From positions 1,833,568-1,879,475 of the forward strand of contig NC_068986.1 of the NCBI RefSeq assembly GCF_001194135.2: a stretch of 45,908 nt of DNA, given 5' to 3'. The stretch's first letter is position 1. The number at the start of each line of letters is the position of its first letter. A program made the position numbers and the translations under genes. Under the pieces are notes generated by a model. It saw only the letters and a list, made by a program, of their open reading frames with translations, was not told the origin of the DNA and ran no database searches. Of this stretch, positions 3,414 to 41,222 are shown piece after piece. This DNA comes from Octopus bimaculoides (taxonomy: Eukaryota).

Positions 3414-5321
3414 TTAACATTTTGTAGTTCTTCAAACATTTACAAAGAAAGATAGCAAAAATACCTGGTACATATTATACTGCTGAATATGATGACGCCA
3501 ACTTAGTTGTTATTTTTCGTGCGGATGGCGACCCTGGATCATTTACAGCTAACATAGTGTTAACATATTTATGATCATTGAAAGAATAAATAGAAATAAT
3601 TATGTGGTAGAGGACGAAAAAGGAGTATTAGTCAATAAATAAGATTATTTTAATTTTTTTAAGCAAATAAGAGAAACAACTCATGAGCTGTTTTGATGTT
3701 ATCATGGCCTCATCAGCACGGACTTTTAAACATTTTTCGCAAACCATTAATCCTGGGGCATTATATTCTTTTATTTCAACTTATTTCAGTGTTTGATATG
3801 TATGAAAACAGCGCGTAAGTTTATGCAAGAAAGTTTGCCATTTACATAAAAATCAAATTCGTGTTGGATTTCAGTAAGCAACTTAAGAATAAGATTAACT
3901 TTTATTTAAAAAAAAAAATAACACAAACACACTTGCGCTCTCTCTCCCTCTCTCTCTCTCTCTCATTTGTAGCGATCATTCCATCCAATCAATTCTACCA
4001 GGCTTGTTTAAATTATTCCTATTTCATAATTTAAAACTCTAGTAAACTCTATTTTGCGACTGTCTATTGTATTTCGGATCAAAAACTAAGCATTTCGTTG
4101 TTGTTCTTTAAAATGAATGAAATAATGCGATAAAATACGCTTAAACGAATCTTGGATTGAATATTGTGTGCATATTCTTCAAGACCATACCTTCTTCAAG
4201 TACAATGGAAAATTACCTCGAAGGGAGGTGGAATACACAGTCTATAATGACTTCACCATATTAGACGAGTTAGCTGCGACACACATACTAATAATAACTG
4301 ACTGCAAACGAAGAATAGGCACAGAAGAATAGGTGGATTGCATGTTAAAACGATTTATACTGTACAGCTGGCTGAAATGGTTTCTCTATAATCTCTGTGA
4401 AACTAGAAACATGGTTAGAGATGATCAAGTGGATGGAGAGGAATATTGTTGTCATTGTCCTAAGCAGCTTCTTTTTCTATACAGATCGGTCCCTACAGAA
4501 AACATCTGCGGAAGTCCATTGGCAATATGAATGAACTATAAGAATAGATTTGATTTTGTTCTTCATACTTCGTTACACCTTGTCATAGTCACCATCGAAG
4601 GTTTTGATTAATTAAACCAACGCTCAGAACTAAAGTAACAGCTATAGCTGCTGTTGCATTATGCTGTCTTCTCCCTAAACTAAGAATATGTCAGCAGAAC
4701 GCGGTTGCATCTATAACGGAGTTGAAAACGAATGCCAACTTGATCACAGTGCTTTTATTTAGCTCTATCTAAATTTTATAACAGAATCTTGGGATGAAAT
4801 TTGTCAAAATTATACGAAGGAAATATTGTGGAATCTTGGAATATACAACAGAAACTAAAATTAATTTGCTATATATTCCTTGTAACCACGATTATTAAAG
4901 ATTTTAGTATGTCCAGGTTAGGAAGTAACTCACTTGAATTATTAACCTACGATTGTAACAAAGAAATGTTTCAGTAATGTTCGATAAACTTTCGAGATTG
5001 TTACAAATGCAAGGCCCCCACCATAACTGAAGATCAACAACTACGACTAACAACTGCCGTGTCAAGTTAAACCGCTAATGGTATGACATCAATTAAAGGA
5101 CATTTTGAATTTGACATCACATTAAATACAAAACAACAGAACAGGGTAAAATATGTGAAAATATAACACTTCAATTATTGTATTGGCATGAAAAATTAAT
5201 TCACAGATGCAACATCAATGACAATCGTCTTTGAATGCATTGTTCAGATTTAATGTTGAATAGCCCTTAGAACAAGGATAAGAAACTTCTTTTTGTAATG
5301 ACCCACTTGTGTATTATATCA

Positions 5322-15723: not shown

Positions 15724-16470
15724 TCAGGCTGAGTAAAAAGTATGCAACGTTTTGAAACATGAAATTCATCACAGTATATTTCAACAATGCGGAAATTTTA
15801 TTCATCAAAGTAAGTACCATTATAATTAATACACTTTTGCCAACGAGTTACAAGTTTGTTTATTCCGATAACATAAAATTCTGGAGTTCTGGAACTTTTG
15901 AACTCTTTGAACGTACTTTCAGCATCAGTTTGATTTTTGAACTCCTTCCCTCGCAGGAAACCATCAAGGTGCTTTAAAAAGTGGTAGTCAGTAGGAGAAA
16001 GGTCTTGAGAATAAGCTGAGTGGGGAAGAACTTCGTAGCCAAGTTACCTCATCTTCTGGAGTGTCATTAGTGAAACGTGTGGTCGAGCATTGTCATGAAG
16101 AATGATTGGCTCTCTTCTGTTGACCAGTCTCAGACGGAAGAGTACCAGTTTTTCGTTCATTTTGGCAATTTCACGACAACATGTTCCTGCAGTAATGGTT
16201 TTTCCGGGTTTTAAGAAGTTATAATGGATGGGTCCAGCAGTACACCACCAAACAGTCACCATAGCCTACTTTTTGAAGAGCTCGGGTTTAGGGAAGGTTT
16301 TCGGTGCTTCATTTTGGTCCAACCACTGCGAAGAACGTTTTTTATTATTGTACAGAAACCACTTTTCATCGCAAGTTATAATACAGTCGAGAAATGGATC
16401 GGTCTGGTTACGGAGAAGCGATGAGCAAATTTCATATCTGCACATTTTCTGATTTTCATTCAAATCGTGT
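15724..16470 (-). mobile_element. Mariner (DD34D) transposon, 3' part, degenerate
   Basis: Translates to HDLNENQK..IITCDEKW..LHDNARPH..YSQDLSPTDYHF..RWQKCINYNGTYFDE* with disruptions. TIR-like end TCAGGCTGAGTAAAAAGTA follows a TA. Confidence 0.92.
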
Positions 16471-16491
16471 TGTAGCGTACAACTTAAGGGA

Positions 16492-16538
<47 letters not shown>

Positions 16539-17469
16539 TATATATATACATAAATACGAACGTAGTAGATAACAGCTATCCTTCGACCGCACTTTGGACC
16601 TTGTTGTGTCTACTACTCTGATTGATTGGTATTGGCACAATTTGTCTCTTGATGCAACCCAACCAATCGCAGCCTTCAGATAACGTCACGTGAGACAGTC
16701 TCTTCTAAACCTCAGTTTGCGCTGACCACTCCCTATAAAACTCCAGCGACACAGCGAGTCGATGTCTTTCGGCTCCAGACCTTTTGAAGTCTAGCCACTG
16801 ACCACAGAACACACAGCCAGTTCCAGCGACGGCACAACTGCAGCCACATGGAGACTCATCAACATTTCTTCCACGCAGCATTCGTCCTAACGTCAGCATC
16901 ATCTCTCTACGTACACACCAACCAACAACGCTCGCACAGATTCTATCTCTACACTGTTTGTGAATTACTTCACCATGGTTAACAGTAAATACAACCTGCG
17001 ACAACCTTCTGTAACAAGTAACCGGCTCTGCATCGTAACCACAGCTTCTTTTACGACATGTGCCTCCCCGGCTCTGCGTTGCAGCCTCAACTTCTTGATA
17101 CAGCATCTCAGTTACTGTGTACCTTGACTACGAACTGGTATTTCCCAGCCTTGTGTCTGGACTTTCTTCTAACGTCATTATAGACTTTTTCTATGCGCTT
17201 TACTTATCGCAAACGCATACATCCATGTTTGTACACACACACTTTGTATACATGATGGCCAGTCTATTATTATGTTTATATGTCGCACTCACACACACAC
17301 AAACACACATGTTAACCTATCAATAAAATCTTCTCTTAAACATTCTACCCCGGTTGTGTCTCTCTTTTCCTTCTGGCACTTATCCTCTTTTCGTATTTTA
17401 TTTGTATCGACCGTGCGATGTACTAAAGGAGCCAGTCTCGTCACTTCTCCTTCCGCACGGTCGTTTACA
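16471..17469 (+). mobile_element. Solo LTR (Ty3/Gypsy-like), 999 bp, inserted into the mariner
   Basis: TGTA...TACA termini, 4-bp TSD GTGT (16467-16470 and 17470-17473), TATAAAA at 16734-16740, AATAAA at 17322-17327, CCAAT boxes upstream of the TATA. Confidence 0.85.
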
Positions 17470-32001: not shown

Positions 32002-34052
32002 TATGCTGACAAGGGCATTGTTGTGGGAGAAATATTTTCAAATCAAGGGAGATAACTAAGATGATTTCAATACGACTGAAGAGGTTTATATATGTGCATA
32101 TACTATGAGATATATATATATATATATATATACACGAGACAGACAGACGGGATTTAATGACAAATCTTGTGTTTAGAGCCAGGTCAACAGACCTACAATC
32201 AAAAGAGGAAATCCCATCTTTTTAGAATAAAAGGTCATTATTTAATGTTTTTCTTGTTTTTTTAGGGCAGATAAATAAAATACCAGTCTAGGGCAATGGA
32301 GAGGTGGAATTATTAGAGTCGAAAGGGTTGCTTTTGTTTTGTAGTACTTGTTCTGGCTCTCTGCATTCTGAGTTCAAATCCTGCTATGGCGTTTTTGATT
32401 AGTCTAACTTAATCACCTGGCTTGACACCACCCTGTATGCCTTAGGTGAGTCACTCTGTTGTATTTAAACCAGGTCTCTAGTTTGAAACTATCTTGCTCT
32501 CTAATAATACTACTACTACTACTACTACTACTACTCAAAATTCCTATGAACGATCATTGGCACTTCCTTTCTACCAGACTAAGCAAATAACTATAAAAAC
32601 CCAGTGACCATAGAAGTTCTCATGGACACAACTGATTCAACACTTTAGCATTTAAACCAGACATATCTGGCCCAAATATTCTATGCTTATTTTCAAATTG
32701 GCCAGACCCAGCCTCTCATGCTGACTTAAAAGTCACATCATCAAAATCTCGAAGCTACAAGATAATACACCATCATCATTAAACATCCATTTTCCAAGCT
32801 AGCATGGGTTGACAGGAGCTGGCAAGGGGTCGTAATGCCCTTCCTAACCCCAATCCCTTTACAAAGTGTACTGCATGCTTTATATGTGGCACTTTGATTT
32901 TTTGGACATCAATTCTGTTGAGACAGGCAGGTCTGCTTGAGAACAACAATGTGCCACATAACTTTGTCCTTTGTCATCTCCTTTGGAAGGCTCAGCAAAA
33001 CAATGTCAATAACTAAGCATTACATTTCACAGAGGAATCCAAATGTTAAAGGGTTACAAAAGGGGTAAGATAACTAATGATTGAATTGTAATATAGTCAA
33101 ATTTGTTTTATCATTCAGACAGTATGTCCAACGTGTCACAAGAGATTTGATTGCAAACTATCAGGCCTGTTGCCATACAGAAGCTCCCTCATACCGTACT
33201 ATAATGTAATGTAGTTGTTTAGTCTCAGGCTAGCCACATTATCAAAGTAACTGAAAGCTTGTTACGTAGGTAACCTAATCAACAAGAGTGGTGGATGTCA
33301 AGACAGCTGTAATTGCCAGGCTAAGGACAAAGGTAGGAAAAGAGAGCTGTTACTTTAGTTGACAACAAACATCTCTCATCAGGTGTTGGGCAAACTGTAT
33401 GATGTGAAATATTTGCATAGAAGCACAACCTAAGTGCTATGCAAAGGCCAAAAAAATAAAAATCATGCAAATGTGCTCTTCTTAGTGTGTAACAGCAATT
33501 GTGAATAAACAAAAAAGCACAATTTTACTGATAGAGAAATTGAACACAAGAGACATTCACTGTTGTGTGTTAGAAAGACTGCAATGATATAGACATGTGT
33601 ATGAAGAATGATTAAGTAAAGTGTCAAATGATTGTTGAGTAAAGTGGATGGAGCATGCAAAATAAGAAAACTGAAGATATGCACAGGTGTTGAGGAATGA
33701 CCTTGTGATGCCAAACCTTACTTAGATGATGAAAAACTACAAACAGGTGGAGAAATGCCATGTTGAAAGCAAATCATTCAAACCATGCCCACAATGTAAT
33801 AACGATACTAATAATGTTCCAGTTGTGACTATGCCATCTTTTTTTTTTTCAGCAATTTACAACTGATTTTATTTCTCAAAGCTTGCCAATTGATATCCCA
33901 AATGACTGCAAACTAGCTTTGATCAGTAGAAGGAGCACATTTTGAACAATTTGAATATACTGTAGTAAAATTCTGATATTTCATGCTATATACATCATAG
34001 TAATTGCATAATTCTTCTACTTTGGATGTTTTCCCTTTTCTAATATTTGTTC

Positions 34053-34722
34053 ATCATCATCATCAGCGGTTAACGTCCGCTTTCCATGCTAGCATGGGTT
34101 GGACGATTTGACTGAGGACTGGTGAACCAGATGGCTACACCAAGCTCCAATCTGATCTGGCAGAGTTTCTACAGCTGGATGCCCTTCCTAACGCCAACCA
34201 CTCTGAGAGTGTAGTGGGTGCTTTTACGTGCCACCGGCACGAAGGCCACTGGCAACGGCCACACTCAAAATGGTGCATTTTACATGCCACCTGCACAGGA
34301 GCCCGTCCAGCAGCACTGGCAACAATCTCGCTCAAATGTCTTTTCACGTGCCAGGAATGAGACGTTGGTAATGATCACGCTCAAATGGTGCTATTTACGT
34401 GCCACCGGCACAGAAGCCAAACAGCTGGTGCTCTGGCAACGATCACGCTTGGACGGTGCTCTTAGTGATTTACTGGTACAGGTGCCATCACGATTTCACT
34501 TTCCAATGAAGGAGACATTGACATGGGGGCCAGTCATCGAATTTAGTTCGATTTCGATTTCACTTGCCTCAACAGGTCTTCACAAGCAGAGTTTAGTGTC
34601 CAATGAAGGAAAGGTAAGCATAAGTGGGCTGGCTACATCCCTGGCAGAGGCCTTGGATTTTGGGGTTGCCGAGTCTTCTCACGCACAGCATATTTCCAAA
34701 GGTCTCGGTCAGAAGTCATTGC
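34053..34722 (-). mobile_element. SINE/RTE-tailed repeat with (ATG)n tail and internal GTGCCACCGGCAC-type units; fragment also at about 32770-32892
   Basis: CATCAT tail, TTTCCATGCTAGCATGGGTTG and GGATGCCCTTCCTAACGCCAACC motifs. Confidence 0.65.
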
Positions 34723-36472
34723 CTTGTTATTGTATTATAACAACTACTGGCAGAACTGGATTTCTCGTCACATTGTCTAGTTATTGGAACACAGGCACAA
34801 CTGAATTCACTCCCTTGTTCTTTTTTTTCCCCCCGCCCTCTCTTCGGCATTAATTGTATCACATTATCAACTGCATAAAAGGACTAAATTCAATGATCGA
34901 ATACATTTTTATAATAAAAAAACAAAAAAGAAGAAACAGCAGTAAAAATTTGTCATATATTACAATTCACATACAATTAACAAATAATTACAATTTGTTT
35001 CTATTTACCAAGATTCTCTACTGTTTATATAATTACTGATATGAAAATTCAATGTCTTGTCAGCAAAGAAAAATAAACTTAGCAGAATCATGGTCAATGG
35101 ATGCAGGAAGAATAGTCATTTGTTTAAGACGCTTGTTTTATAATTACAGTGGTTAAGAGTTCAATCCCACTGCACAGAACCTGGAGTTGACTGAAGCGAT
35201 GTGAGTGAAATTTGATAGACGGAAACTGTGTAGCAGTCTACTGGAAGAACTGCTTCTTCTGTTTGTAGGTGGTTCTTATATCTGTTGCCAAGTTTAACAA
35301 AACCATATACCCAGTGCATTTCAGACGAGTCCACTATTCAGACCAGGTCTCTACACTGAAGATAACATCTTCCCATCAGCCTTGGGGGCTCTGAAAAGGC
35401 ATTATTGATGTATTCTTAGCCCTTCTCTAAGCTATAAAACAATTATGAAAGAGTTACTAAGTCACAAGAGAATTGTATTTTGTACGGCAATGACTTTGAA
35501 GTTTGGATAATCAGAAATGACAGATCTGTACATCACAATAATATACTGACATATCTTATGACACTTAAATGTCTTTAAAAAATGAGGAACTTGATTTATA
35601 TGTCCAAAGAATATTCCTAAGTTCCACTTTATTAAATCAGAATCATCAATTATCAAGGTTAGTAAAAACATATACTAAAGTACCTTTCAGTCAAAAATTG
35701 TTTTGTACTAGAAAAATCAATGTATTAGTGCATAAATATTTCGCCTTTTCTTTCGTGACCGAATATTATACTTCACCATCATCATTCGTTCTTTTTTTCT
35801 TTCTTAAAAACTGAGATTACTTTTAATGTTCCTGAAACAAAATGACACTAGCATTCTTTCATGTCATCATATACACGTTTCTTAGGAAGCAAAAGAGAAA
35901 GCTAGCATAGGTAGGTATTTTAGCAAATTTGACCATTTGCATTTCGTGTCAATAACACCATACCGTACTGAACCATTAAGTAGGAATGGAACATACAGAG
36001 AATCAGATAGACTAAGGCAAAAAAAATAATTTTAAGAAATAAAATATGGTGCATTGTTAGAACCCAGCACCTTTATTTCTAAGCTGTTTTACTTCAAGAC
36101 TGTAAATTCCTTGTTTATTCCAAAATGAACCACCAGCTTGTTTAGTCTCTCATTATAACTACGCTAAACATAATTAGGGATTCCAAGCTTCTGTATCTGG
36201 CATAAACTTGGACAAGGAAGTTTCTGGAATGTTTACTCTCCTGACAGTATTGCTATTTTCTTGTAAACATTTTGGTGTTCATTAAAACCATTTTTTACCC
36301 TTTTCGTACAATATAAATTTTTCACTTTATCATTATCCTTTTTCAAAGAGAAAAACTTAAAATATCAATTTTGATTCTTGTCAAGAAACAAAAACTTTAT
36401 CAACATTTCTAACTGTTCAATTAAGTTAGATTCTGCTGAATATTTTACCTGTAGCAGTTAATAAATATGCTT

Positions 36473-36478
36473 TTTATT
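36473..36478 (-). terminator. Proximal AATAAA, candidate poly(A) signal
   Basis: AATAAA starts 14 nt after the final TGA. Further AATAAA hexamers lie downstream (near 36075 and 35615), so the site used is unknown. Confidence 0.3.
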
Positions 36479-36491
36479 CGTGTCTCTCAGC

Positions 36492-39395
36492 TCAGTCACA
36501 ATCAGACTCATCAGACAACAAGTTCACAACATCATTTAAGACTTTCTGTTTTTCTTTACATATTATTTGACTCGTTACAAAAATGCATTTTGACTTTCCA
36601 GGATGCTTTACTTGAATATGTTTCAAAATTTGCTGTCGTTGACTATTTTTAGCCTCACAGTGCGGACAGTGCACATATTTCAGCAAGTTCAGTTGCAAGT
36701 GCTGCAAGAGCTCAGCACTACATTGAAATATGAGGCCACAATATGCGCAGCAGAATTCTTTCTCCTCTGAGTGAACGGAATCATTGTGTTGTACAAACAT
36801 TTTGACAAGATTTGTGTTAAAACCACAAAGGGAACAAGAATAAAGAAGAAACATGTCTGTAGAGACATGAGTAGATAAGTGTTTTAAAAAGCAGTCAATA
36901 ACTGGAAATGCTTGGCCACAGTGTGCACAAACATAATCCTTTTTCTGTTTACTATGTACACAACGTAAATGCTCTACAAATTCATCTTGCACAAGGCTAG
37001 AAAAAGAACAATTTGAAAATCCACATATATAAAAGTTCCCACCATAGAGTTCATTTTTCTCTTTAGGATAGAGATTTACATTAATACTGGTAGTCTTTAA
37101 ATCGAGTGGCTCTGTTTTTATTTTAGTAACATTGTCAACATTTGAAGAAACTACTAAATTAGATTCCTCAGATGTGGACTCTTTTTTTGATATCACATTT
37201 GAATGTGGAGATTCCACAATCAACTTCCCAGATTCAGGTTCAGTTACTCTGGATAAATTATTTTCAGCAGGTTCAAACACTGTTCTATCATCAATCACAA
37301 TCGCATTAGAATCTAATGTTTTCTTTACAGACTCCAAAGTACTCTTAAGTGATTGTTGAGACGGTTTACTTGACTCCAAACAGTCACCAGACAAAGGCTC
37401 CACCAGATCCAAGTCAATAAACGTTCCATCTGATAGATTCCTCTCGACATCTCTCACAGACCAAACTGCTTCCACCTTAATGTTGTTGCCACAATCTGAC
37501 TGGTCAGGCATTTCTTCCTTTTCACCTGGTTGGAATAATAGCTTTGGATAAATCTCAGGTTTATGTCCAAGTAGTTTAGAAATTGTTTTATTGTTTATGA
37601 GTAAACTGTTGTAGGAAGTAGCAGGAGTCTGTTCCAAATATTTTGAAGTATTTTTGTCGGAAGAATTTGGTTTCAATTTTGGTTTGTAGACATTGATGCC
37701 AATTACACTTTGGTTTGACACAGGAGGGTTCGTTTTAGGTGCATCAGTCACCATAGTCTTATACGTGTAAATATTATTAGATGACGACACACTAGGAGAA
37801 ACTACATTCGAGTTGGTTGTCAGTGAATTAGACTGAACATTAGAGGGTGGGATATTTGATGGAGAATATATGTTTGAATAAGGTGTAGTTGCAATAAGAT
37901 TCATTACACCAGGCTCCAAAGATTGAGGGAATTTTGCATATGGCAGTATTTTGTATTTGGCAGTATTAACTGGTGAAACTACAGGTAGAGTAGGTGTTAC
38001 CAAATTAGGGGGAATAAAAAATCCTAAAATGTCTTGATTTTGGTTATTAACCTGAACATTGGTTGCAAGTGCATATGGAGCAAGGGAAGTGGTAGTTGCA
38101 GTTGGAACATTGGAAGCAAATGCCTTTGTAGCAGATGATTCAGTCACAGAAGTGAGAGGAACTGAACTTACAGGTATTTGTTTGTTTGAAGATCCAAAGA
38201 GAAGTGACTGGTAACCAAAAGAATTGACTGCGCCTGGAATAGTAATAATAATAGGTGACACAGCTTCAGAAACTTTGGCTGAAACTGGAGGACTCTGAAC
38301 TTCAGGTGTAGCACAAACGATTTGAAAATTCTGTGTCGAAGGTGTTTGTAAAGTGCCTAAATAATTTTTTCGTAATATATTTGGCAATATATTTGGCAAT
38401 AAAACAGGAGATTTCTTCTGAAGAGTTGCATATTTTTTCTGATTGGGTGAGTAAGACATTTGCTTTTGTGAAAGATTAACAGGTGCAGCTGTTGCAGGTG
38501 ATAAAATAGCAGGTGAATCACTTTTTGAAGATCCAGTAGAGGTTTTTTCCTTGTTGTGCTTGGCCATCTCTTGAGATGGAGTGTCAGTCGAGGCATCACT
38601 GATAATTAGAGAATTAGTTTGTCCCGGTAATCCATCTAATTTCAGTTGGCCGTCTAGTCACTTGACTGGCGGCACACACTGTTCTCTGAAGAACTGTTCC
38701 TCAAAACTCTTTCTTGGCTGACATGCCTGAAGATTATTTTTCTTTAAAATAGGGATCCGATTCAAAAATGTTTTCGCAGCAGACATACTTTTCACCATTG
38801 AAGGTGACTTTAGAGAAGACAGCTGAATGATTTCATGAGATGAGCAAGCAGTTTTGGTAGCAGTGACAGGTATAGGAGAACTTGGCTGTGGAGCAGGCGT
38901 TGAAGAGCTAATATTCTGTTGATCCACATGGGAATCAGTTACAGGAACTGATGCCACTTTCTCAGGGTTTACAATATCCTCAAAAGGAACAAGACTAAAT
39001 ATTAAATTCTTACTTGCATGTTTTACAGAATGGTGGCTTTTAATAGAAGTGACTTTAGAAAAATAGCCACGACAATGGAAGCACCGTAACAAGAAAGTAG
39101 TTGTAGCAGGAGTTTTACCTTCCAGGTATGGCTCTTCAAGTTGAAGCAGGAGTTTCTTATATTTCTTTTTATTTTCATTGTCTGGCTGATTAGTTGTAGC
39201 GATCCTTTTCTTGTTGAAAGAACGACACATTGAGATGTGTGCATCAAATAAGCCACTGTCATCTGTAGTGAATTTACAACCAGAACACCGCTGTACACCA
39301 TACTTTGACCAATCAACTGAACTCGCTGGTTTCGCTTTCGCATTATTTTCACCACTTTCTGCTGCCTTTGACTCGCCTCTCTCATTCAGATTCAT
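36492..39395 (-). CDS. Multi-zinc-finger (C2H2/C2HC) protein, 967 aa if the single in-frame TGA at 38660-38658 is read through
   Basis: ORFs 38658..39473 and 36492..38567 are in the same frame. The 90 nt between them translate without stops (LDGQLKLDGLPGQTNSLIISDASTDTPSQE). First in-frame ATG after the upstream stop is at 39395 (AAAATG). Fingers: CSGC..HISMC and CFHC..HHSVKH before the TGA; CGFSNC..HLRCVH, CAHC..HLSTH, CSLC..HNDSVH, CAYC..HLQLN (degenerate) and CPHC..HIQVKH after it, with an S/T/P-rich linker. Confidence 0.8.
38654..38660 (-). promoter_or_regulatory. UGA-CUAG leaky stop (readthrough) motif
   Basis: Minus strand reads GTC AAG TGA CTA GAC GGC. UGA CUAG is the established readthrough context of e.g. 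AQP4, OPRL1, OPRK1, MAPK10, LDHB and MDH1. Confidence 0.7.
38658..39395 (-). CDS. Short (terminated) product of the zinc-finger gene, 245 aa, two fingers
   Basis: ATG 39395 to TGA 38660-38658: MNLNERGES...EQCVPPVK*. Confidence 0.7.
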   Translation of the reverse strand: MNLNERGESKAAESGENNAKAKPASSVDWSKYGVQRCSGCKFTTDDSGLFDAHISMCRSFNKKRIATTNQPDNENKKKYKKLLLQLEEPYLEGKTPATTTFLLRCFHCRGYFSKVTSIKSHHSVKHASKNLIFSLVPFEDIVNPEKVASVPVTDSHVDQQNISSSTPAPQPSSPIPVTATKTACSSHEIIQLSSLKSPSMVKSMSAAKTFLNRIPILKKNNLQACQPRKSFEEQFFREQCVPPVK

Positions 39396-39581
39396 TTTTG
39401 GTTGTTTATTTTCTTTTACCCTTTTTCCCAACACTGTTTGCCTTCGTATCAAAAGTTTCTGTATATCTAGCACATTAGAAACTTTATCAAAACATATGTT
39501 TACTTAGACTGTTTCCAACATGTGAAGAATGGAATGACACCTTTTTCGTAAAAAAACAAATCAGTTTCCAAATAGCGGTAC

Positions 39582-39607
39582 CTGGAAAGAGAAGAAATAC
39601 AAAATAT
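39582..39607 (-). promoter_or_regulatory. 3' splice site opening the large zinc-finger exon (exon starts 39581)
   Basis: Minus strand tattttgtatttcttctctttcCAG|GTACC has a strong polypyrimidine tract. All three frames close before ATG 39395, so 39581-39396 is 5' UTR. Confidence 0.75.
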
Positions 39608-41222
39608 GAACTTTTAAAGCCAAACAAATTTGACAGAAATTTAAAAAATTAAATTATCACTCATAGAAAACTATGCCAAACAATATTCATGAAGTGTATA
39701 TATATTAAAAATATAGTTTAACACCCCCACACACATACCACCACCAATACCGGAAATCTTGCTTATCTAACTGGAAATCCCCTTCCATACTGGTAGTCTC
39801 CTCTCTCATTACCAGCGATCTCACCCATGGCCCCCACTTCTCTCTCTCTCTTGCCCGGGACTAACCTAACCAGATAGCAACCCACCCATTTACTTAATCT
39901 AACATTGACATATTTACATTCATATTTATGTTTCATATTTATATTTGCAGCACCAGTAATGCTTGTTTTTACAATGCTCATAACACTTTCATTTACAATG
40001 TTTCCTTCTCTTACCCCCAGCAGGGACATGTTTCAATGGTGATAAGTTAAAAACAAGAGATGGCCAAGCATAAGTTAAAAACGAGTAAGTTAAAAATAAA
40101 AGATAAAGTTATTGATGCTATATAAATCTATAAACTTTTGATAGAAACTGTTTTTGAATAATGGATGATAAACCAATAAATAAAACAATCTAAATATTGG
40201 GTCGAAAAGCCCGTTTGAACAGAGAAGTCAAAGGCTGCTTGTTGGACTCAAACCCACTTTTCCTGTGGACATGACAGACACTATCATTGGAGCACTATGG
40301 GTTCAAGTCCGTGGACAGCCAACTTCTATCTAAAAGGAATTTTCAACTCAATATCAACATACTATTTGTTTATAGCTTCATCTACTTCAAGATTCACCAT
40401 TCAAAAAAAAGATAAAGTTAATCCTGGTGGGCTCTTCTTGTTCTCCTTTTTCTTTTTTTTTTTTCTTTTTTTACACAGCCAGAACAAATACTGCAAGACA
40501 CTAATGATATTAATGACTAGCATAGTAAACAATAAACCAACAATTACTGCTTACTTTCATCAAATGGGTTTCAGAGTTTTCAAAAACAAACACTCTGGAT
40601 CGTATCAATTCCTCCAGCTCCAATATCACTTTTACTTCTCACACTAATTGAACTAGAACTTCCCCTGTTGTTTCATTTTTGCCAATGTAAACTACTTGCA
40701 GTTTCTTCAAATCCCAGATTCCTTTTTCAAGCCACAGCTCTGATGTATATAAAAATGAGTCACAAAGCAAGTATATGTTGACTGTAGCTAACTGGTAATA
40801 ATGTCTAAAATTAATGAATGTATTGAATGATTGGGTATCCCCACTTAATTTTCTTTATTATAGACAAAATATTTCTGTCATTAGTTTTAAATATTAATTT
40901 TTAAATGATGCCCTTTCTGAAAATCGAGATGAATTTTTTTTTGTTTTTTTAATTATCTTAAGTGACAATTTCGAAATATTTTGTTAAAACTGTGCATTGG
41001 TTGGATCTTTTTTAAAACGGGGGCCACATTTTTCATTAATGTTTTACGTAGTGTTTTTGGTACCGAAAGACTTTCAAACTTCGTATACTTATCTATTTTG
41101 TGTTATAGAACAGAAAAATATTTTTGTATTCGAATTTATTTCATCTAAAAAATTGTCTTATTTCGATAATTTCAACCAATCACTGACGTCCATTCAGCCG
41201 ATATACATTAAGTGCCGACTAC

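Follow-up and report, generated by a model that had tools for sequence, protein, structure and literature searches.

A conserved UGA-CUAG stop and predicted hairpin inside an octopod zinc-finger gene point to programmed readthrough

The window analysed here, a stretch of 45,908 nucleotides from Octopus bimaculoides (NC_068986.1, positions 1,833,568 to 1,879,475 of the forward strand), carries on its minus strand a gene for a C2H2 zinc-finger protein whose frame of 968 codons, otherwise open, is broken by a single internal UGA stop codon in UGA-CUAG, the leakiest stop context known. We consider programmed readthrough of this stop to be the best explanation for the locus, with a probability of roughly 0.7, because UGA-CUA(G) followed by a 3' stem-loop is a known architecture of stimulated readthrough. 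The evidence is comparative and comes mainly from five sequences: the window and the orthologous loci of Octopus sinensis, Octopus vulgaris, an octopod represented in the Logan assemblies (SRR11869391/94, hereafter the Logan octopod) and Argonauta hians.

The frame begins with the ATG at 39395-39393 and meets its only internal stop, TGA, at 38660-38658, with CTAG (38657-38654) immediately 3' of it. Past the stop it continues through 30 stop-free codons to an ATG at 38567, and from there through 690 further codons to a TGA at 36494-36492. An in-frame TAA (39506-39504) ends the frame on the 5' side, so ATG 39395 is the first in-frame ATG. We refer to the two parts as open reading frames (ORFs) 1 and 2. 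The main features, all on the minus strand, are as follows.

38661-39395, minus strand: ORF1, an N-terminal protein of 245 codons, seen in the sequence and in separately annotated orthologues of 244-248 amino acids in O. vulgaris and A. hians
About 39287-39225, minus strand: ORF1 finger 1, C-x2-C-x12-H-x3-C, from its Cys/His pattern
About 39083-39018, minus strand: ORF1 finger 2, C-x2-C-x12-H-x4-H, from its Cys/His pattern
38658-38660, minus strand: in-frame UGA, candidate readthrough stop, identical in five assemblies
38654-38657, minus strand: CUAG tetranucleotide directly after the UGA, invariant in five sequences
38568-38657, minus strand: linker of 30 codons from the UGA to the first downstream AUG, open in frame 0, whereas the two alternative frames hold 4 and 3 stops
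36495-38567, minus strand: ORF2, 691 codons from the first AUG past the stop, with a Ser/Thr/Pro-rich middle region and five C-terminal C2H2 fingers
About 37037-36603, minus strand: ORF2 finger array, five C2H2 fingers, from its match to solved C2H2 arrays
36492-36494, minus strand: final UGA stop in the context UGA-G, whose 3' context differs in Argonauta; used as a control for the internal stop

An earlier note on this DNA, made from the letters alone, had described one TGA breaking an otherwise open 968-codon frame in the exact context TGA CTAG, with two fingers in the first 245 amino acids and five more downstream, and the sequence bears out each of these points. Tandem C-x2-C...H-x3-5-H fingers are recognisable in the C-terminal region and identify the product as a C2H2 zinc-finger protein; the C-terminal 186 amino acids match the finger arrays of PRDM9, ZNF568 and CTCF in solved structures, with E values from 1e-17 to 1e-10. 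Pfam returns only a sub-threshold match to zf-Di19, and the N-terminal half has no match in the PDB or in Pfam.

Protein searches were run against a collection of 5.8 billion proteins, Logan assemblies included. The closest named relatives are O. sinensis and O. vulgaris, at 88-89% amino-acid identity. When the read-through translation is the query, the matches cover the downstream ORF only, which is annotated separately in O. sinensis (682 amino acids) and forms a 687-amino-acid ORF in the Logan octopod. The first 245 amino acids retrieve separate proteins of 244-248 amino acids in O. vulgaris, the Logan octopod and Argonauta hians (55% identity for Argonauta). The finger domain used as the only query gave no match, not even to the gene's own protein, and this negative carries no information. 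Three independent genome annotations retain the stop, calling the two halves separately or the longer ORF alone, and none of the three splices it out. In all four further assemblies TGA-CTAG ends ORF1 at the homologous codon, the linker is free of stops and ORF2 follows in the same frame; no second stop or frameshift occurs in the 720+ downstream codons of any of the five sequences. From the UGA onward, 24 of 26 nucleotides are identical between Octopus and Argonauta, and the same comparison past the true final stop, our control, finds no similarity. The stop and its context appear to have been kept since before the split of Octopus and Argonauta. The presence of the same TGA-CTAG in four other independent assemblies also rules out an assembly error or a private allele.

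Selection was estimated by the Nei-Gojobori method on a codon alignment of the five sequences, with omega denoting the ratio of nonsynonymous (dN) to synonymous (dS) divergence. Between Octopus and Argonauta, omega is 0.28 for ORF1 (dS 1.03), 0.29 for ORF2 (dS 1.34) and 0.11 for the finger array (dS 1.32). Both ORFs are under purifying selection and neither half is decaying; the constraint on ORF2 indicates that the sequence past the stop still gives rise to a protein. The earlier note had proposed this comparison as a check on its idea, namely whether TGA-CTAG is conserved at the homologous codon with dN/dS below 1 on both sides, and both turn out to be so.

The linker is constrained as RNA, not as protein. 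Synonymous divergence elsewhere in the gene is near saturation between Octopus and Argonauta (dS 1.0-1.3). In the linker, all 25 alignable third positions are identical between the two, and the 12 changes that have occurred all lie at positions 1 and 2. Third-position identity in the two ORFs is only 51-57%, which gives the run of 25 out of 25 a probability of about 0.55^25, or ~3e-7. In a sliding window, the sole sustained stretch of 100% third-position identity in the gene lies around the stop and the linker, with identity climbing from about 20 codons 5' of the stop and collapsing right after ATG 38567. A synonymous-site conservation peak of this kind is typical of recoding signals (PMC3159437), and the substitution pattern, with third positions fixed and positions 1 and 2 variable, fits the two conserved hairpins described below. 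The frame of the linker is open in all five sequences, with 6-7 stops in the other two frames together, and its sole indel, a 15-nt deletion in Argonauta, is a multiple of three and stays in frame; in composition-matched shuffles an open linker arises by chance with P of 0.15-0.24, so that by itself its openness is weak evidence. The earlier description of these 30 codons as stop-free and protein-like is confirmed in its first half but not in its second. An alternative-frame or antisense gene behind the pattern is ruled out, as all other frames and the antisense strand carry stops.

Two hairpins are predicted in this region by RNAalifold and RNAfold from the five sequences.

38598-38646, minus strand: hairpin 1, 5' arm ACUGAAAUUAGA (38646-38635) and 3' arm UCUAAUUAUCAGU (38610-38598), with a spacer of 11 nt from the UGA
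38564-38579, minus strand: hairpin 2, CCAUCU-CAAG-AGAUGG, a perfect 6-bp stem that encloses the AUG at 38567-38565

The free energy predicted for hairpin 1 is -13.3 kcal/mol for the Octopus sequence and -11.7 for that of Argonauta (z scores of -3.1 to -3.7). All 12 pairs of its lower stem are retained in all five sequences, one of them through an A-U to G-C double change in Argonauta, and the 15-nt Argonauta deletion is confined to the apical part. In hairpin 2 the 6 pairs are invariant, the Argonauta difference falls in the loop only, and nucleotide conservation drops sharply just 3' of the structure. What speaks for the two structures is chiefly their conservation, their thermodynamics and the position of the Argonauta deletion.

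Signals of the same general kind are known from viruses, vertebrates and insects. Alphaviruses and several plant viruses use UGA-CUA or UGA-CGG followed after 7-8 nt by a stem of at least 12 bp; the 3' stem raises readthrough up to 10-fold, and the signal was discovered as a peak of synonymous-site conservation (PMC3159437). These type II signals (alphavirus nsP3/nsP4 and the replicases of tobra-, furo- and pomoviruses) share with the octopus gene the UGA-CUA, a short spacer, a stem of at least 12 bp, their discovery through the synonymous-site peak and the gating of a large downstream domain (PMC3159437). The viral structures, however, span ~100-150 nt and stand 7-8 nt from the stop, whereas the octopus gene is a cellular, syntenic one with a 49-nt hairpin and an 11-nt spacer. 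In four vertebrate genes UGA-CUAG is conserved throughout vertebrates and supports up to ~31% readthrough in reporters in HEK-293T cells, to which the UGA and every one of the CUAG bases contribute (PMC4132726). OPRL1, OPRK1, AQP4 and MAPK10 (also LDHB and MDH1) have the identical stop and four following bases and the same long-range conservation, and just past the motif the conservation is likewise at the nucleotide rather than the amino-acid level (PMC4132726). Their extensions, in contrast, are targeting or regulatory tails of tens of residues or fewer, and their stop is the ancestral end of the ORF; the octopus extension is 722 residues long, holds the main DNA-binding array and begins at a stop that lies inside the continuous ORF of an outgroup. 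A similar layout is known from Drosophila kelch, where UGA readthrough joins two long ORFs to give products of 77 and 160 kDa, with 3' stem-loops and tissue-specific efficiency (bioRxiv 10.1101/2020.06.22.165522). In kelch, to which headcase is a related case, one mRNA carries a functional ORF1 and a long ORF2 with a UGA between them, readthrough is stimulated by conserved stem-loops 3' of the UGA, and the extension runs to hundreds of residues, as does that of the octopus gene. Kelch differs in being an unrelated insect gene, for a BTB-Kelch ubiquitin-ligase adaptor, in lacking the CUAG context, and in that its readthrough was shown by western blots and reporters while that of the octopus gene is inferred.

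If the UGA is read through, ribosomes would begin at AUG 39395 and translate 245 codons, and the majority would terminate at UGA 38660-38658 to release a 245-amino-acid protein with two fingers. In a minority, a near-cognate tRNA would read the UGA, inserting Trp, Arg or Cys if other systems are a guide, and these ribosomes would pass in frame through the 30-codon linker and the 691-codon ORF2, yielding a 967-amino-acid protein with seven fingers that would thereby gain the five-finger DNA-binding array. This would be promoted by the leaky UGA-C context, by the CUAG and by the hairpin 11 nt past the stop, which would sit at the mRNA entrance of the ribosome while the UGA occupies the A site. 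We infer that the mature mRNA keeps the UGA and that ribosomes pass it at some frequency, inserting an amino acid; the predicted hairpins would act as stimulators. Frameshifting into ORF2 is ruled out, as a shifted ribosome would meet a stop after one codon in the +1 frame (GAC UAG) and after 15 codons in the -1 frame.

The origin of the arrangement can be approached through more distant relatives. Only two came up when 1.84 billion representative proteins were searched with a profile. The coding sequence of the first, P0007, is one unbroken ORF of 2053 codons on a 242-kb genomic contig (L006, ERZ21867824), with no intron anywhere in its 6.2 kb. It carries both parts, the N-terminal domain at residues 108-245 and the finger array at residues 1150-1340. 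Because P0007 holds both in one ORF, the two octopod ORFs appear to have been parts of one protein ancestrally, and since this distant relative encodes both halves uninterrupted, the internal stop appears to be a derived octopod feature. The source of P0007 is probably another cephalopod. The codon homologous to the stop was not found in the outgroup, where the region is not alignable. The interpretation of the octopus gene put forward in the earlier note, readthrough, is thus supported on comparative grounds, to which the conserved hairpin, the third-position peak and the single outgroup ORF have been added.

Two observations concern the outgroup sequences themselves. At 11118-11153 of contig L006 (ORF offset 1117) the outgroup ORF contains TGACTAGAC, then CAACT and AAATTAG, ~110 codons past the N-terminal domain, a place that corresponds roughly to that of the octopod stop. 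The TGA of this TGACTAGAC is out of frame (CTG ACT AGA, Leu-Thr-Arg), and the sister sequence, L007, lacks it; the occurrence may be chance or a trace of the origin of the octopod stop. In L007, the Logan contig of the second distant relative (SRR9969967), the frame switches near 3600 (region 3602-4645), where an ORF of 1181 amino acids is followed by an overlapping one of 348 amino acids; the switch may reflect either a genuine frameshift or a fault in the assembly.

Several points weigh against readthrough. The hairpin covariation amounts to one base pair in five sequences, and its shuffle control is not significant (103/500). The 11-nt spacer somewhat exceeds the 7-8 nt of the viral signals (PMC3159437), and hairpin 2, placed around the AUG of ORF2, would also fit an element controlling independent initiation there. 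The linker has no protein-level signature of purifying selection (dN 0.25, equal to that of its neighbours, with dS 0), and its open frame may have been frozen by the RNA-level constraint instead of being kept for translation. In both lineages the stop lies within a GT..AG pair whose length is divisible by three (63 and 48 nt). Finally, the Logan contigs L002 and L005 end in repeats, carry intron-like flanks, differ at 3 nt and are collinear with the genomes, and are probably genomic sequences and not transcripts.

Some of these points lead to other explanations, among them gene fission. A nonsense mutation would have split the ancestral ORF; ORF1 would be made from the full mRNA, and ORF2 would be translated from AUG 38567 through a shorter transcript of its own, internal initiation or reinitiation, with the linker serving as ORF2 promoter, 5' leader or site of regulatory hairpins. 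The independent purifying selection on each ORF, the separate proteins called by annotators, the evolution of the linker, which is not protein-like, and the conserved 6-bp hairpin around the ORF2 AUG, just past which nucleotide conservation ends, all agree with this. Fission does not, however, explain why exactly UGA, rather than another stop, and CUAG have been conserved, for which the a priori chance is ~1/768, and it leaves the shared frame, the open linker and the indel of a multiple of three as coincidence or frozen history. Eukaryotic reinitiation past an ORF of 245 codons is known to be very inefficient, and a hairpin over the AUG would hinder scanning and not help it; we regard fission as unlikely. 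The GT..AG pair, for its part, could bound a mini-intron that is spliced in frame from some or all transcripts and so joins the two ORFs, with the unspliced form terminating at the UGA:

38599-38661, minus strand: candidate GT..AG mini-intron of 63 nt (48 nt in Argonauta), AA/GUGACU ... AUUAUCAG/U, from sequence inspection

The GT and AG are retained in all five sequences, branch-point-like CUAAU motifs and a pyrimidine-rich tract lie 5' of the AG, and sequence conservation is typical for regulated retained introns. Yet the donor is weak, with A or C and not G at -1 and C and not G at +5, and scores ~0-1 bit against ~8 for a typical donor under a generic metazoan matrix, as a rough estimate. 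A length of 48-63 nt is at the lower limit of animal intron size; the branch-point-like and pyrimidine motifs form the 3' arm of hairpin 1, where they would be sequestered; and conservation from +7 to +26 far exceeds that of a splice donor. The outgroup gene is intronless across 6.2 kb, the three annotations retain the stop, and no spliced product of ~946 amino acids appears among the matches in the 5.8 billion proteins (Logan included), a weak negative given that octopus RNA-seq coverage seems sparse there. We consider a mini-intron improbable.

Stop-loss A-to-I editing could join the ORFs at the RNA level, with ADAR converting the A of the UGA (38658) to inosine to give UGG (Trp) and the conserved flanks forming the double-stranded substrate. 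Coleoid cephalopods edit coding sequences on a massive scale, strong conservation around their editing sites is well established, and in Octopus a small local hairpin has the UGA at its edge. Pipelines for coleoid editomes already accommodate adjacent ORFs that are split by one stop and joined by stop-loss editing, UAG to UGG (PMC8382921). Such editing needs an A in a duplex with a favourable neighbour, whereas the octopus A follows G, the least favoured 5' neighbour of ADAR, and stands outside the conserved hairpin, which begins 11 nt downstream; in Argonauta, four pairs of the small hairpin around the UGA are disrupted. Editing also leaves the conservation of CUAG in particular unexplained, and no fused ORF was found in any database contig or protein, which makes this explanation very improbable. 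An in-frame UGA with a nearby 3' hairpin resembles some selenoprotein mRNAs (PMC4132726), so selenocysteine could be inserted at the UGA, with the adjacent hairpin acting as a selenocysteine redefinition element. This is rejected and is hardly credible: no selenocysteine insertion sequence or other Rfam family was found at E <= 1 in window positions 34000-40500 or at the orthologous loci L002 and L003, none of the homologues carries Cys there, and the site lies in a poorly conserved, disordered-looking linker with no redox motif. Last, a stop a quarter of the way into the ancestral ORF looks like a null allele, and the gene might be a pseudogene in decay, or a nonsense allele, whose second half no longer functions. 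We give this practically no credence, and it is ruled out by a stop common to five assemblies spanning dS above 1, by the 722 codons past it, which in all five are free of frameshifts and of any second stop, and by omega far below 1 (0.29 for the downstream part, 0.11 for the fingers). Taken jointly, a mini-intron, A-to-I editing and separate initiation of ORF2 have a low but appreciable probability.

The remaining features bear on the gene's structure and surroundings. One further element precedes the coding frame:

39582-39590, minus strand: putative 3' splice acceptor ucuuuccag/g, start of the large coding exon, from the sequence only; the motif is also present in the Logan octopod (L002)

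Because this good acceptor lies just 5' of the upstream TAA, the entire coding region is likely to sit in one large exon. Collinearity between the window and the O. sinensis locus extends over ~22 kb, which makes this a single-copy syntenic octopod gene and no mobile element; a transposon or retroviral gag-pol-type gene is ruled out by this collinearity together with the ordinary C2H2 fingers. The 5' leader contains a tiny upstream ORF, ATG TTT TGA (39495-39487, minus strand), also found in O. sinensis (L001) and the Logan octopod (L002), and an in-frame mini-ORF (39521-39504, minus strand) whose TAA closes the main frame before ATG 39395.

At the other end of the gene, AATAAA occurs 13 nt past the final stop and a donor-like CAG/GTAAA ~40 nt past it (region about 36478-36445, minus strand); both are present in all four Octopus sequences and absent from Argonauta. 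If this donor in the 3' untranslated region (UTR) were used, the exon junction might, speculatively, expose messages on which translation ends at the internal UGA to nonsense-mediated decay and spare those on which it ends at the final stop. A block of ~5.2 kb (34850-40028) has 92% identity to O. sinensis, compared with 85-87% in its flanks, and reaches 1.6 kb past the final stop; a long alternative 3' UTR or some other conserved element may account for it. Farther away, a mariner-type transposase fragment lies at window positions 16266-16640 on the minus strand (Pfam Transposase_1, E 4e-5), and L006 has a similar element close to the outgroup gene. The window also shows the assembly gaps of a short-read scaffold, as N runs between TA/CA-type microsatellites at ~6.6-6.9, 17.9-18.2, 28.4-28.8 and 41.2-42.0 kb, none of them inside the gene.

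Most cellular genes with confirmed readthrough come from insects and crustaceans, and a few from vertebrates. The earlier note knew of no description of readthrough in cephalopods, and we found no such report in the literature searched; abundant readthrough has been inferred only within Pancrustacea (PMC5100048). The signal proposed here is of a known kind. Its phylum would be new, and two further traits are unusual: an extension as long as 722 residues that includes the main DNA-binding array, and an apparent origin by a stop gained inside an ancestral ORF. We think it somewhat better than even that the whole account is correct, in which an octopod zinc-finger gene that is one ORF in distant relatives gained an internal UGA-CUAG and hairpin before the Octopus/Argonauta split, and the ribosome decides whether the five-finger array, part of an extension three times the terminated product, is attached. 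It would then be the first mollusc gene described with programmed readthrough, with the vertebrate signal working across bilaterians and possibly regulated by tissue as in Drosophila kelch.

If this is true, a mollusc case with the exact vertebrate motif would make UGA-CUAG a general bilaterian signal. The gated part would be the main DNA-binding domain of a putative transcription factor and not a short tail, so that a difference in kind between the two products would be expected; the short one might, for instance, be a finger-less competitor or cofactor of the DNA-binding form. The continuous outgroup ORF would offer a rare view of how such a gene originates, by a stop gained inside an ORF as opposed to the extension of an ORF past its former end. 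Being short and well defined, the locus is directly testable by reporters. Cephalopods are a model for diversification of the proteome at the RNA level by editing, and recoding at the level of the ribosome would add a second layer.

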